In this document: positions 1 to 16,705 of the stretch, piece by piece
How the letters are laid out: every line of letters starts with the position of its first letter
Position numbering within the stretch: position 1 is the stretch's first letter
From: Oculina patagonica
Lineage: Eukaryota
Length of the DNA: 64,000 bases
Assembly: GCF_052425735.1 (NCBI RefSeq)
Contig: NC_135771.1
Coordinates: forward strand, 868,001-932,000
Direction of reading: 5' to 3'
Made by a program: the position numbers and the translations under genes
The notes under the pieces: model-generated
What the model saw: only the letters and a program-made list of their open reading frames with translations
Databases searched by the model: none
Told to the model about the DNA's origin: nothing

Positions 1-1699
1 CTCTTGGGAAATAAAAGGGTTAAAGTTTCATCATGCACACCATATGCCTGCTCTGCTCTGTATTTAACTAAAGCTTTAACCAACTTCGTTGCTACTTGTA
101 CAAGCATGTTTTCTGGATGCTCTTAAATCGCTTGGCACCATCATTTTGCCTGAGGCTAAACATTCATGATCATAACTTATCACCTTTCGGTGTGCATGTA
201 TAGGTGCAGAGTTATTGGCAAATACCTGCAGTCAAATTGCCTCATACGTGTAATGCAGATTAGGTATGTACATCACATGTCATCATCATCATCATCATCC
301 TCATCGTCCTCATCATCACAAATCCTATATTACACATTTTATTTTCAGTTGGCTTTTTAAATGCACCTAAACTGTGACTAATGTTTCCTGCCTTCCATGT
401 GTGTTATTGCCTTTGCTTGCACTGCACTTACACCATCCATTACTCTGACATGGTTAAGCATAGCTCAAGAAATCAAAAATTGTAAGAAGGGGATGTCTGA
501 GAATGGCCTCTTCCGCAGACTACTCCTTTTAATCCTTTATATTGGGATTCATTTGGTGGCAGAGGGGAAGAGAGAAAACTGGGACTAGTAGAGAGGAAGA
601 AGTCCTGTGGCTCTGTCCCAGTCTCTCTTCTGTAACAAAGGGAGTTGCCTGCAAGAAGGCTTGAGCAACAAGCTGACAATAAATATTCCATTCTGTCTTG
701 TTCTGTCAGAGTTATACATTTATTTCTCTGGAAATACATGTAGGCCTTGCATGCAGTTGCAAGGGTTTTCATTGGTCTTCATTTCAGAACTTCTTTGACT
801 ATTTGTTGAGATCATTCTTAACAAGTCACCTTTACTTTTCAGGCCTCCAGACAACACAGTCAAGCAAGATAACAGTGAATCAGCATTTCAAGTTGTAGGA
901 TATCGAAAGGGTGGAAAAGTTCTACATGAACACTGGGTGTGACCAGTTTTACTCAATAATTTCTGTTTTTTTTTAACAAATTTGGCCTTTCAATAACACA
1001 CAAAGTCTGAAAATCGGAACCAACTTATGAGTATTTTTTCGCTTTTTTGTTTGTTGGTTTGTTTTTTTTTTCTTCACTGTGAATTATGATGGCAGTCAAC
1101 AAGCCTGGAAAAAAGAAGCAAACAAAACAGATTATTGAAAGGCATAGTAAGGCATTATCTGATAAGCTTGTGTGATTTTATAATTATACAGTAATTCAAC
1201 AAAGCTGCTTTATAACTACAGTACATGGCATTTTTTCATGGTTTTTGTGAAAGCAATTCTTTATGTTTCAGGGTCACACTTTTTGAAAATTCCTTTTGAT
1301 GCACTTCTGTATTTGTATCAAGTCATTTACATGTACATGGCACATTCAAATTTTATTTATTTTTAATAGTCAGCAAAAAAGTCGCCTTGCAATTGAGGAC
1401 AATACCGTTTTGCTTTCATTAAGTAAGAAGCATTTTAAAACTTCAAAAAAAAGAAAAAATATTTTTTTAGTAAAATAGAGTTGGACCTTTTAACAAGATT
1501 GCCATGTTATTATTTAGAGTAAGGAAGCAAAGATTTCTCTTCATTAACTTGCATGTACAAATTATACCAGGAGAGATGTAATGAGATCCAAGCCAGAAAA
1601 TTTGTTTCTAAACAGTGTAGCTGACAGATACCATAAAAGCGTCATTTAAGCTAAACCTTACCAAGCCCCACACAGATCTTTGTAGCACTGCATTGTGAG

Positions 1700-1990
1700 T
1701 ACCGGGGCCTGCGGCGCCCTGATCGCAGGAGCCCCGCACGAGCAGAAACCGGGCACTCCGGAGCACGCCAGAGGAGACCGGACCCGTGACACACGAAAGG
1801 AGACAGAGTGCCTCGCGAAGACAAGGGGGCACGAGAACTGCACCAAGCGCGACGCGGGCGGCGAGAGACAGGACACGGGGAGGAGCGAACGAGGGGGACG
1901 CGAGAAGGGGAGGACGGAGGGAGGACACCCCAGGGACAGAGGCCGGAACGCGCCATGAGACCGGAACGAAATGGTCCAAGGATCGCGCCC
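1700..1990. other. GC/CpG-rich, T-poor self-complementary island of unknown origin (island A)
   Basis: Abrupt compositional shift, several hairpins, and CATTGTGAG direct repeats at 1691-1699 and 2058-2066. Confidence 0.7.
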
Positions 1991-2594
1991 AAAGTGTTTG
2001 GTTTGGATCTCACTTCACTCTTTTCCAACCAAAGAGATTCAGAGGTTTCCAAGGAAACATTGTGAGGATATGATGTGAAATTTAAAATAGCTGTTAAACT
2101 ACAGTTGATCCGTATTTGCCAAAATCAAAAACAGAGGCCAGTGTCTATAATGTAGAGGTTTTATTTTAAGCAAATGATAAGAATATTGTGGAGGGACGTG
2201 AACTGTCTGTTGTGATCAGGTGGTGGAGTATGGCAGTGGCCAGTTAAATTTATGATGTCCAGTTGTAACAATGATTTTTTTACTGCCATGTTCATTGTAA
2301 ATATTATTGTACATAAAAAAGAAAAATAATCAAAATATTCACATAATTGCCACAGACTTATTTAAATGCTGCCTAGGAGAATATTGTGGTACATTAAGAC
2401 AATAGCCGCAAGTTGATGATTTTAGTTATTCTCATCAATTGTCTGCTAAATAATGTGTGGATATCGTGAGGAGAAATTAGATTTTTGTCACTCTTGGGAA
2501 TTAAAGAGCTTTTGAGGGACTGGTAGTATTTGAGCCTGAAAAAACAGCTGCCTCTCATCTCTCCAAGTTGGTTCAGTGTTTGCTTAAGCCAAAC

Positions 2595-2753
2595 TAGACT
2601 GCTCACAGCTCTCTATTTTTTTTTATTTTTCTTCCATAGTTGAATGGAGGGAAAGAATCAACCCAACCCCACTCCCCATGTTTCACACTTTGCACCCGCT
2701 GATCCTCTCACGTTTTTTAGCGTTGAAAAAAAACAGAGGCTGTGAACAGTCTT
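2595..2753. mobile_element. Short TIR element with 9-bp target-site duplication (AcademH-like, non-autonomous)
   Basis: TIRs TAGACTGCTCACAGC / GCTGTGAACAGTCT; AAGCCAAAC duplicated at 2586-2594 and 2754-2762. Confidence 0.65.
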
Positions 2754-2789
2754 AAGCCAAACTGGCCAAGCAGTGAGAGGGAGCTGTAT

Positions 2790-2979
2790 TGTGCAGTTCC
2801 AGAAAATATCCATACTCACTCCATGGAAGGTCATTGGAAATTCTGAGGGGGTAGGAGCTTTCAAACGCCAAAATTTTACAGGAAAGTATGGGGCTTAACT
2901 GGAATTTTTTCCAGAGGGGAGGGGGATTCAGATCTAAAACTGTTCGCTGGGAGGAGTGGATATTTTCTGAAACAACACA
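2790..2979. mobile_element. MITE, same family as 9420-9609
   Basis: TIRs TGTGCAGTTCCAGAAAATATCC / GGATATTTTCTGAAACAACACA. The right end plus flank is tandemly re-duplicated at ~3025-3085. Confidence 0.75.
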
Positions 2980-3651
2980 TTTGAAGGCTGTTGTATTTGT
3001 ACCAGCTGGATTGTTATCTTCTGGGGGAGGGATTTTCTGAAACAACACATTTGAAGGCTAGTTGTATTTGTACCAGCATGGATTGTAAGTTATCTTTTTT
3101 AGCGTTTGCTTTGTTTTCTGCAAGAAAACCAGATGACTGTTGTAATGCGCATTTTCTTTTTTACATAAAAGAGGTCCAGTTAGACTATTTTTCCTACCTT
3201 GCATCAGGGCTGTGTTAAATAAAGAACTCTAATAAAAGCCTACAGCTGGTGATAGTTAGCCCCATGGAGCATATCAGTTATTTTCTTTTGTAAAATAGAA
3301 TCTGATCTAGGAGTGCCTTTTAAAAATAGTGTAAATAGGTTTATTATTAAATGTAATTTAATAAAGGGAATAATTTGTGGTAATGTATGTGCAATCGTCA
3401 TAGAAATTAGATGATTTGTAACCACAAGTGAAGTGGAAGTAGATATATCGTGAATAACCAGTTAGGTTTTTTTTGGTGGGAGGGGGTATGGTCCATCAGT
3501 CCTGATTTAAATTGGGATTTATTTTCTAATTTTAGAAAGCAAAATTGGAAATAATATCTTTTGTTAACCTATGTGATATGAAGGTGAACTGCAGAGTCCA
3601 TTTTAGTATTATGTTCCTGTGCTGAACACTTTTCTACCTTAGTGGTATTTC

Positions 3652-3890
3652 TCTCCACCCAGAAATGGGTGGCGGGGAGGGAGTATGCTTCCTGAGAGCG
3701 TCCTCAGGGCATTTATGTACATATATTATAGTACTGGCCCGGGAAGCTCTGCAGTTTTGCCATATCCCCCCCTCCTCTTTGTTTTAGCACTGAGGACGTC
3801 TGCGAGATTGAACAAGAGACCGGCAGCAGAGAAGCCAGCAGTTCCGTGCGTGGTCCCCTGCATCCAAACTGTTTTTGTGTCTCCACCCAG
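3652..3890. other. Structured insert with 11-bp direct repeats and pseudoknot potential (island B)
   Basis: TCTCCACCCAG at 3652-3662 and 3880-3890, a GAAA tetraloop hairpin, and CGTCCTCAG/CTGAGGACG pairing. Confidence 0.55.
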
Positions 3891-4838
3891 GCACTGGTTA
3901 AATAACTGTGAAAATGTACTGGGAGGTAGTCTAACTTATGCACCAATCAATATTACGTTGGGGAGAGGGCAGGGGGTTTGACAGCAATTGTCCGCCCTTA
4001 GTGGGGACTCCTGACTATTCTAAAGGAATCTCTAACAAAGTTATTGACGTTTAGTGGTTTTTGACCATCCACGAATGCCCTGTGGTGGGACATTTGAACA
4101 GAAAATCCCGGCTAATAGGTTTAAATTTCCCTCCAATTCCCATCCTTCCTCATGACGCGCATAGCAAAAATAAACGTGACGGAAACGTCCTCTGTAATGA
4201 AGTATACATAGTGAGGGAGTTCCTCTTAAAATGGATAGGTGATGATGGGAAATTACTATGCGATTTCCCGCATTTTGATTGGTTCTTACTTATGATCTAT
4301 CAGAGTACAGACACATGGATGACGTCACGCGGTGGTGTGACTCGCGCGCGTGATCAGAGTTCATAGTCCAATTCAGAGTTGTCGGCAAAGTTTTTCAAAC
4401 TTGCGGTGCCACAACCAAGCAAAAAAGTTCAGCTTAATTACAAATCTTCAGTGAGAAACAATACGCCAAGCATCGTTCACCTTTCGAAGCATTTAACTAG
4501 GCGAAGCAAGCTTGAAGAAGACAGTGAATTATTCAAGAAATTATCCGAAATCTGTATAAAAGTTTGACCGATGTTGTACAGTTGGACGACGCCACAGAAA
4601 ACGAACGAAATGCGGTTGAACGCTTCGGTTAATGCTTACAGATTTGAACAACTTTCCAAATCGGAATAAAGGTTAGTTTTTTCATTGACTCTCAATTGAC
4701 CATTTTTCTGTTTATTCAATCGGATTAACAATGCTTCACGTTAACGAAAACTTAATAGTGAAATCAAAACAACTTAGCTCATCGGTACGGCAGCATTGCT
4801 CACACAGAAGTGTGCTGAAGTCTTGTGTTATTATATAA

Positions 4839-5026
4839 AACAAATAGATTTCATTTTGCCGTGCGTCTGTTCAGTAATAGATCACAGAAGACGTCAAAAT
4901 GTGGTATGAACATCAGTGACCCACTCGGCTAGCGCCTCGTGGGCCACTTCTCTGTTCATACCACATTTTGACGTCATCTGTGATCTATTACTGAACAGAC
5001 GCACGGCAAAATGAAATCTATTTGTT
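4839..5026. mobile_element. Long-palindrome foldback element / MITE
   Basis: About 75-bp near-perfect inverted arms (AACAAATAGATTTCATTTTGCCGTGCGTCTGTTCAG... / ...CTGAACAGACGCACGGCAAAATGAAATCTATTTGTT). Confidence 0.8.
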
Positions 5027-5089
5027 AGCCAGGGCGGGAGAAGGCCTTCTCCCGCGCGCGCCCTGGCTTAGCCAAGTTTCCTCCCCCGC

Positions 5090-5215
5090 TTCCGGAAGTT
5101 AGTTTCTGCGGTTGCGTGACCGGAAGTAATCCCAGACCACCAGTTTCTTCTGTAAAGTTCGACCGAGTCCTCCACTCCTCCGGGCTCCTCGAAGTGAATT
5201 TTTGTCATCATGGCG
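5090..5215 (+). promoter_or_regulatory. CpG-rich core promoter region of SLC38A9 with ETS (CCGGAAGT) sites and a YY1-like ATGGCG motif
   Basis: CCGGAAGT at ~5092 and ~5120 and CATGGCG at ~5208, 70-190 bp upstream of the ATG. CpG is retained here, unlike the gene body. Confidence 0.5.
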
Positions 5216-5283
5216 ATGTGCACGTCGCTCATATGATAGCTATTCAGCTTTAGTTCTGCTGTTCTGACGACGCCTTGGCTGCT

Positions 5284-8200
5284 ATGGAAGGAAGAGGCAC
5301 AAATGATCATGCAGTAAAAGCCATAGACGAAAAATCTCCTCTCCTTTCTGTACAAGACGATCCAAGCAATGGGAGTAGCGACAGGTTAAGTCTCTCAACT
5401 TCAAGCAATTCAAGGTAGAATTGCTTACAAATTTAATATGTTCTAGAATGTGGGTGATTATACCATGTAAATCAGCCTTTTAAACGACAGTTTTCATATC
5501 GATGGCCTGTTTAATCATTTAGAAAGCTTATATGAGCTTGATCTAGCTACTAATCACATGTCACGTGAAAAATTTTACGACACGCATTTACGAAACGTTT
5601 TGCTGTGGTTTTCGTTTATTCCTTGGACGAATACGTCGTATTATGCATGGCTAACAATGAAATTGTAGGAGATACTAAAAATAAGGCCCCTGGGAAATAA
5701 GGGCTGCAAGAAATTTCTCAGAATATCAGGAAGAATTTTAAAATCAAAGCCTCTTCGAGCCACGACTGAATTTTTTTCACCAAGTTTTACGTTTGGTTTT
5801 CATATCTTGAATATATATGAGCGGCAGATGTTCAAACATTTCTTTGATGCAATTAAAAAGCAAAAAAACGGGCAAACATGCGTGACAATTGCAGACAATC
5901 GGCGGTTGACCCCACAATGTCTATAACATTGATATAAGATCTTTTCATTTTACGTGACTGAGATTGTCGGATTAGCTCAGTCGTGTAGGTTTCAGGATGG
6001 AGTGTGAGAGGTCGTGAGATCAAAACCCAGAAGTGTCTGTTCCTTTTTCCCTTTTTTTCTGTTTTTACCCCGCAGCACTAAAATGGTTTGTTTATTCTAT
6101 CGCTCCTGTATACATTGGAGAATAAAAGCATTTACACATGATTTACATGTAAGCCGTAAAGTAATAACGCTGTAAATAAATACCGTATATCAGAACATAT
6201 AGACTGATTCAGGTAAGTATACGAAAGAGATCAATCGGTGCATCGCTTTTGCGGCTCTTAATGTGGAAGATAAACTTGTTTATCGTATTTTACAAATTTC
6301 CGGCGTTATCTTTGCAATAGGAAATTATGTTATGCGAGGAATCTTCTAAGTATAGTATGAATGCGCGAGTGTCAGTTTCATGCATGCGTTACAAGCAGCT
6401 GTAACGCATGCAAATATCGCATGTCGCATCACTTTTGCGGCTCTTAATGTCCACCTTTTCGGCGGTCAGGTATCTTCCCCACATAATTTTTTTAGCCGCA
6501 TTTTGTTTCTTTGCTTTTGCCTTCCTTGTTAAACCTTAAAAAATAGCCTTATTACGGCCGCCTTGCCACACTCTCACTTCTCTTATCAAAATGTTTACAG
6601 CCCCAAGCTGGAAATAATAGAATATGTTGAACCCGATTTAATTTTCGAATGGTCATAGATGTGCGACGCTAGCTTAAAACAGTGATACATTGGAGAATAA
6701 AAGCATTTACATGTATAAACCCGTAAAGTAATAACGCTGTACGAAAGAGATCGATCAGTGCATCGCTTTTTGCGGCTCTTAATGTGGTAGATAAACTTGT
6801 TTATCGTAGTTGAAAATTCAGGCGTTAACTTTGCAATAGGAAATTATGTTATGCGAGGAATCTTCTCTGTATAGAAGATGCGCGAGTGTCAGTTTCATTT
6901 ATCGAGCGTTTGCATGTGTTACAAGCAGCTGTAACGCATGGAAATATCGCATGTTGCATCGCTTTTGCGGCTCTTAATAACGCTGTACGAAAGAGATCGA
7001 TCAGTGCATCGCTTTTTGCGGCTGTTAATGTGGTAGATAAACTTGTTTATCGTAGTTGAAAATTCAGGCGTTATCTTTGCAATAGGAAATTATGTTATGC
7101 GAGGAATGTTTACAGCTGATGGACCAACCAACCAACCAACCAACCAACCATGTGAGTGAAGTCGGGCTACCCACGACACTCCTTCATTGAAAATTCAGTC
7201 GTAATTATGACGCCATCAATTCTCTTCACCAGTCCCAACCCAGCCCCATACGTTCCTTGTTTGTTGAATTATTTCTGGCAAAATCAATATTATTAAAAGA
7301 CACATACATAGCTTTTCTTTATTGAAACTGTTCTTAATGCCTGTTTCTCTAGGAATCAAGATGACAACAACAGAACTAATGAGAATTCACGGAGCGACTC
7401 ACTTGATATTGAGATACGCAATCCTCGTCCAAAGAGAAAACCATTTCATTATAACTCACTCAAAAATCCAATTGTTACTTCACATGATGCAGACATGGCT
7501 GCCAAATTCAACCGCTATAGATACATTTCCAGACTGTCCAGACACAACTTGGTAAGGAAATTACAATACTCAATTTTTTTTTTTATTTGTGAGAGGTATG
7601 GTGGCCTTACTGTTAGTGCACTTTATTCTGGATTGAGTACTCCAGGCTTGAGCCCTGGCTGGGGCACTGCTTTGTTTTCTTGGGCAAAACACTTACATGT
7701 AACTCTCACAGTGCCTCTCTCCACCCAGTTGTATAAATGTACTGGCGAATTTACTGCCTGGGGTAACCCTGCGTTGGACTAGCATCCCATCCAGGAGGGA
7801 GCGGAATTACTCCTGGTCCCTTCATGCTACGGAAACTGGGATAAGCTCTGGCCTGATGGGCCACTAGGCTCGTATGCAGACTTTACCTTACCTTAGCTAC
7901 TTTTTTGATTTAATGATATAAATCTACATCTAGGAATAGCATTTTACTTTTAATTATGGAGTTGGTCAAAATGTGTTTGTCTTCAGAGGAGAAAGCCTAA
8001 AAATGAAAACATCTGAAACTGAACTGAAACTTTATTTACCCTCGGTAATATGAGCCGTGTTGGGGCTCTAGTAAGTATATGCTAATGAAACCGAGCATTT
8101 CACAGTATACAACACAATGCGCAAAGATAGACCACAACGCCAGGAACTCCGTGCCCTACTCTTTTCGATAAGTGTGTGGGTTCTTTAACGTCCCCTGTTG

Positions 8201-16240: not shown

Positions 16241-16705
16241 CATGAGAAAATGAAAGGACAGAGTTTTGCTCTCTTACTCTCATTTTTTCTCATCATGAAT
16301 GAGGAAGTGAACAGATGTGAGGGAGGGGACAATTGTGGACGGAAGGAGACCGAGTACTGCACCCCCCCCCATCAACTCATGAGGGGAAAAGTGATCAGTG
16401 TATCGCGTGCGGAAACCACCCAAGGCTGCGACCCGACTCCCCGTGGAGACGGAAAAGCAGCAGGAGGACCACCATCTCTTCCCTTGACCCCCAGACCGGA
16501 TGCGGCCACGGCTTAGCGTCGGCGTGTCGCGCGCGGGCCGCTCCAGCGGCGGGCGGAGGAGACGGCGACCGGGGCCTCCGACCCCCGCCCATCCTGCCCC
16601 GCCCCGGAGACGGGGAGGGGGGGGGGGGGGGGCCCGGCCGCGAGATAGGGAAGGCGGGAGGGGGGGCGGGCGCCGCAGAAAGAGATGAGCGGCTCAGGAG
16701 CCCTT
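16241..16705. other. GC/CpG-rich multi-hairpin island with G-quadruplex potential (island C)
   Basis: Very GC-rich 3' half inside AT-rich intergenic DNA, nested stems, and a G16 run at 16617-16632. Confidence 0.7.

Follow-up and report, generated by a model that had tools for sequence, protein, structure and literature searches.

Location and composition of the block

The window, the 64-kb stretch of DNA analysed here, corresponds to C14:868001-932000 of a 529-Mb coral assembly and contains a compact GC- and CpG-rich block near its left end. The gene to the left, on the + strand, includes two large coiled-coil exons (L004 5701-6717 and 7148-9181) and ends approximately 820 bp short of the window. 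On the right, a second + strand gene begins near 5254; it is putatively SLC38A9, the label given in the sequence-only reading of this DNA. The block is located in the tail of the left coiled-coil gene or just downstream of it, and no minus-strand gene was evident around it. The features at the site are as follows, with positions given in the window.

1662..1701, left flank; joined directly to 1990 onward in contigs of other corals
1691..1699, + strand, left copy of CATTGTGAG; 2 bases before the junction, not a target-site duplication
1702..1989, + strand, thinned MITE copy of 288 nt, differing from the canonical element only by deletions (LCS and gap-minimising alignment)
1962..1989, + strand, what is left of the right-hand terminal inverted repeat, the part of the block that gave the first tie to the family (BLAST, search for the repeat pattern, and alignment)
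1990..2085, right flank; ordinary CpG-depleted DNA
2058..2066, + strand, right copy of CATTGTGAG; 68 bp past the other junction, a chance repeat

Base counts for 1700-1990 were A 27%, C 29%, G 39.5%, and T 4.5%, and this stretch contained 34 CpG, with an observed/expected ratio (o/e) of 1.02. Outside the block, CpG o/e was 0.22 (1-1690) and 0.25 (1991-3600), and the flanks were ordinary AT-rich, CpG-depleted DNA. The contrast first described from the letters, a CpG-rich block inside CpG-depleted DNA, was therefore confirmed. The key feature of 1702-1989, however, is the near-absence of T, which had gone unremarked. No stop codon was found in any of the six frames across the block, because stops require T on the + strand and A for the minus strand. 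The open frames described earlier are thus confirmed across the block, and its overlapping ORFs result from composition, also as proposed, since without T there are no stops on either strand.

The site is empty in other corals

Contigs from four public coral runs (X1, X3, X12, and X8), each from a different study, were placed on positions 1001-3000 of the window. In all four, 1701 was joined straight to 1990 with 288 letters skipped and 1 bp of microhomology at the empty-site junction, and contig depth over 1738-1938 was zero. This places the insertion between 1701 and 1702 (+/- 1 base), with the far end at 1989/1990. Contigs of X3 displayed 0 differences from the window in the flanks up to the junction, indicating that the flanks are free of errors. 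The block was absent from every indexed public run, none of which is known to come from the source colony. For 1600-2100, the best indexed run contained a share of 0.32 of the words sampled, about what lies wholly within the flanks, and a 26-mer of the block had 0 matches in metagenome contigs. Thus, the check on raw reads that had been proposed for this block found it unsupported in public data, with the empty site directly observed in four runs. With nothing at the matching site in other corals, the block represents an insertion, and the earlier view that it is recent holds.

A 9-bp direct repeat had been reported to accompany the block. Both copies of CATTGTGAG, at 1691 and 2058, are present, but they do not bound the insertion. 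A pair of this kind is compatible with chance: 0.5 were expected in 64 kb, and at least two copies occurred in 11 of 100 shuffles. As a target-site duplication the repeat was rejected, being away from the junctions and compatible with chance.

The same contigs revealed two further features to the right of the block. Over 2223-2306, contigs of X1 and X12 carry 75 other letters in place of 82, and small indels were seen at 2191-2325 in all runs, so that this stretch is polymorphic or poorly polished. At 2743-2943 there is an abundant short interspersed element, a very high-copy repeat with many joints and loose ends, for which the summed contig depth in three DNA runs was 30,000-88,000, compared with about 50-200 alongside.

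The block as a thinned copy of a 673-bp element

The first link to other sequences in the assembly was a weak BLAST match between the last 105 bases of the block and C1:5748441-5748551, part of a second GC-rich block. The window copy has the same orientation as L008:1505-2177 in minus-strand reading. By longest common subsequence (LCS), 288 of 289 letters were found in order in the 673-bp element, compared with 251 +/- 2.8 for composition-matched shuffles (z = 13), 256 for the opposite strand, and 250 for the reversed element. The gap-minimising alignment gave 287 matches, 0 mismatches, and 1 extra letter, and the 386 element letters missing from the block were distributed over at least 121 gaps of 1-19 letters. 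MAFFT and ordinary global alignment were misleading, producing a poor fit and spurious substitutions; LCS together with the gap-minimising alignment resolved the relation.

The right terminal inverted repeat, canonically TTGGTCCAATGGATCGCGCCC, reads TGGTCCAA-GGATCGCG-CC in the window copy and is recognisable with 2-3 letters lost, while the left one was mostly dropped. The window copy has no 3-bp target-site duplication, and against the empty site only the 1 bp of microhomology is seen. This is expected if the whole inserted string, duplication included, was thinned. Judged from these alignments, the block is derived from a resident 673-bp PIF/Harbinger MITE family. The suggestion that it is foreign DNA, the other half of the recent-or-foreign proposal, is thereby contradicted, since the letters of the block occur, in order, in a transposon resident in the coral genome.

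This origin also accounts for the CpG content. The parent element is already CpG-rich (39 CpG, o/e 1.31). According to the alignment, 21 of the 34 CpGs of the block were inherited from it, and the other 13 were newly made where A or T between C and G went missing. The island-like appearance results from a CpG-rich parent and from CpGs created by letter loss; the notion of an unmethylated island spared from decay gave way to this explanation.

The composition itself would also be anticipated if the minus-strand transcript of an element had been hyperedited from A to G by an ADAR-type enzyme, reverse-copied, and inserted: the low T of the + strand (4.5%) corresponds to depleted A on the opposite strand, the GC content is elevated, a target-site duplication is missing, and RNA editing is extensive in corals. 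Editing, however, yields substitutions, of which there were 0 among the 287 aligned letters; the missing T was deleted, not converted to C, and C itself was partly lost (kept 0.57). With all differences being deletions, the alignment rules out a hyperedited retrocopy, to which we assign almost no probability. The block and its relatives described below resemble fungal RIP and APOBEC- or ADAR-edited retroelements in that a strong strand-asymmetric skew affects a small number of copies within a repeat family; they differ in that transitions are the rule in those systems, while only deletions and no substitutions were found here.

Exon, promoter, and RNA readings

A CpG o/e of 1.0 within depleted DNA, open frames, and a minus-strand GTAAGG at 1661 could be taken to mark foreign or unmethylated DNA, or else the start of a minus-strand gene, as its first exon or its CpG-island promoter. 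The block was nevertheless traced letter for letter to a resident transposon family, and its neighbouring genes are on the + strand. Pfam searches with both long open frames of the block gave no family match. No splice joint at 1661 or 2085 was seen among the joints shown, which come from contigs of runs whose RNA status is guessed, and a contig of X8 of 1,680 letters ran from 1080 to 2816 unbroken except for the skipped block. The proposal that the block interrupts a minus-strand exon, bounded by a possible acceptor near 2085 and the GTAAGG donor at 1661, was accordingly abandoned, and a foreign, promoter, or exon origin is extremely unlikely.

The hairpins drawn in the block fared no better. 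Several GC stems can be drawn, as would suit a hairpin module in DNA, or a structured RNA, with its own function. The folding energy of the minus strand was -97.3 kcal/mol, compared with -101.0 +/- 4.1 kcal/mol for shuffles (z = +0.91), and 164 of the 200 shuffles folded at least as well. The stems are therefore ordinary. A search of window positions 1-6000 gave no Rfam match, in the block or elsewhere, and an inverted-repeat search found none inside it, so that a functional hairpin module is hardly credible.

A near-perfect palindrome at 4885-4980 showed miRNA-like Rfam matches on both strands (mir-497 and mir-2, 24-27 bits), which are under the gathering scores.

The parent family

Canonical copies of the element carry perfect terminal inverted repeats of 21 bp, GGGCGCGATCCATTGGACCAA, and a genome search found this pattern at 89 places with no more than 2 mismatches. 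There are about 35-40 MITE copies, and most members are 673 bp long. The composition of the element is normal (A 29, C 22, G 21, and T 29%). The 12 intact copies examined were 673 +/- 17 bp, except for one of 602 bp with 89% identity; the other 11 matched the reference copy at 97-100% identity, in nine cases at 99% or more. Clean 3-bp target-site duplications flanked all 12 copies (CTT, TCG, ATC, TAA, GCG, CCT, AAG, TTT, CAA, AAT, CTC, and GTT). The near-identity of the copies indicates recent activity, and the family is young and probably still mobile. In a young, mobile family, polymorphic insertions are to be expected.

Three longer elements are candidate autonomous partners of the MITE. 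The first, L046 337-4185 (C4:24917337-24921184), encodes a DDE_Tnp_4 transposase domain (PF13359, E = 1.9e-12) together with an opposite-strand Myb/SANT-like domain (PF13837, E = 3.8e-10), the ORFs being fragments of 144 and 242 aa. The others are C4:45454453-45458300 (3.85 kb) and L047 322-4918 (C12:3855422-3860017, 4.6 kb).

The family resembles PIF/Harbinger elements and Tourist-like MITEs in its 21-bp terminal inverted repeats and 3-bp duplications, and in partners of 3.85 kb with a DDE_Tnp_4 fragment and a Myb/SANT-like ORF on opposite strands. It differs in that the duplications show no TWA/TAA preference, with 1 TAA among 12. The window copy differs further in having no duplication and having lost most of the left repeat, as a thinned rendering of the element.

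Other thinned copies and the strand rule

Three more thinned copies were located, and each could be placed in the element almost without remainder.

C1:5748181-5748551, C1 copy, 370 of 371 letters in order (LCS)
C7:1272893-1273282, C7 copy, 390 of 390 letters in order (LCS)
about C2:13592995-13593417, C2 copy, 421 of 423 letters in order (LCS), element inverted

Each of the three gave z = 21-28 against shuffles and had 92-110 deletion blocks with no substitutions. When pooled with the window copy, about 1,470 letters were kept without substitution, and the losses amounted to about 1,220 letters spread over at least 433 blocks. A BLAST search with the thinned copies found no additional thinned members.

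The letters were not lost evenly. The shares kept, all read on the + strand of the assembly, were as follows.

Window copy: G 0.83, C 0.57, A 0.40, T 0.06
C1 copy: G 0.95, C 0.74, A 0.40, T 0.28
C7 copy: G 0.84, C 0.81, A 0.52, T 0.28
C2 copy: G about 0.91-0.93, C about 0.91-0.92, A 0.59, T 0.24

In all four copies, survival on the + strand followed the order G, C, A, T, with G and C near-equal in the C2 copy. The inverted C2 copy separates the strand of the assembly from that of the element: in element coordinates it kept A at 0.24 and T at 0.59, losing A and not T. The bias is therefore tied to the assembly strand and not to the element. Loss was heavier within runs. The survival of T runs was correlated among the three copies of the same orientation (r = 0.29-0.47) and uncorrelated with that in the inverted copy (r = 0.01-0.04), indicating that loss depends on context on the assembly strand.

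A fifth copy was found at L042 (150-1073; C4:26211750-26212672), in which the right 240 nt are intact and join abruptly to a T-poor tract. The tract is 685 nt long and contains A 39%, G 36%, C 21%, and T 4% on the + strand, with T locally at 0-4%. It exceeds the matching part of the 673-bp element and must therefore derive from a longer or different source. Comparison with the 1.1-, 1.4-, 3.8-, and 4.6-kb relatives by exact-subsequence span and LCS gave results that were at shuffle level or powerless. With this copy, the strand rule covers five copies on five scaffolds, an agreement with a probability of about 1 in 16 if strand were random.

Origin of the thinning

These properties are best explained, with a probability of roughly 85%, by an artefact of consensus building or polishing at a new, probably heterozygous MITE insertion. 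Micro-deletions without substitution, a bias following the assembly strand, perfect flanks, a young family, and absence from public data together argue for an artefact. The sequence of events may have been as follows. The colony would carry a new 673-bp non-autonomous PIF/Harbinger insertion at C14:869,701/869,702 that is probably heterozygous or that only some of the reads contain. Long-read consensus or polishing would then have weighed inserted and empty reads together, letter by letter, under indel penalties that would depend on the letter and on its context, as read along the forward strand of the contig. G and C would mostly be kept, A about half the time, and T almost never, and the output would be a 288-letter "median" string present in neither haplotype. 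Here we infer the software origin of the loss, the heterozygosity, and the program step involved. The animal itself probably lacks the 288-letter form.

Consensus errors at heterozygous insertions show the same characteristics, with the error confined to the insert, perfect flanks, deletions only, and the worst loss in A/T runs following the assembly strand. A literature search yielded no published account of letter-specific thinning with the survival order G, C, A, T, and found no paper describing the assembly methods. A variant of the artefact explanation, in which one poor read was patched in, is less likely because five of five copies share the strand.

It is also conceivable that the block is real DNA, a MITE physically thinned by a strand-specific process that removed T and A, for example during error-prone synthesis in transposition or break repair, and then fixed in the colony. 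The block lies within otherwise perfect sequence, five family members have the same pattern, and the lack of a visible 3-bp duplication together with 1 bp of microhomology is what break capture would leave. On the other hand, the bias follows the + strand of the assembly and not the orientation of the element, the sequence is in no public run, and more than 100 micro-deletions per copy without substitution fit no known mechanism; we know of no polymerase or repair route with such an outcome. Real DNA is therefore an improbable source of the block. Smaller still is the chance that all the thinned copies are real and that the coral can remove T and A from a single strand of active-transposon copies without introducing substitutions. 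If it were so, thinned fragments could re-insert with or without transposase, and the process would be a new genome defence or a by-product of repair.

Meaning for the locus and for users of the assembly

Under the preferred explanation, an artefact at a new insertion, little biology is left over at this locus beyond a young Harbinger MITE whose insertion between two coral genes is probably polymorphic. For users of this assembly, single-copy blocks that are rich in GC and CpG, nearly devoid of one letter, and absent from relatives may be thinned transposon insertions. Such blocks can mimic CpG islands, orphan insertions, uORF leaders, and RNA modules. They can be diagnosed as in-order subsequences of a resident repeat with zero substitutions.

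Elsewhere in the window, the single-copy Island C (16320-16705) contains G 48%, C 31%, A 14%, and T 6% on the + strand, which is the letter order of the thinned copies, and has sharp edges. It possibly fits the profile of a thinned insertion and may be another one; no source element was found for it.

At L043 (C9:26552000-26554000), about 700 bp are rich in homopolymers (about G16, C10, A18, then C6 and T5). The DNA around this stretch is normal, and the stretch adjoins an end repeat of the family with one mismatch; it looks like low-quality consensus.
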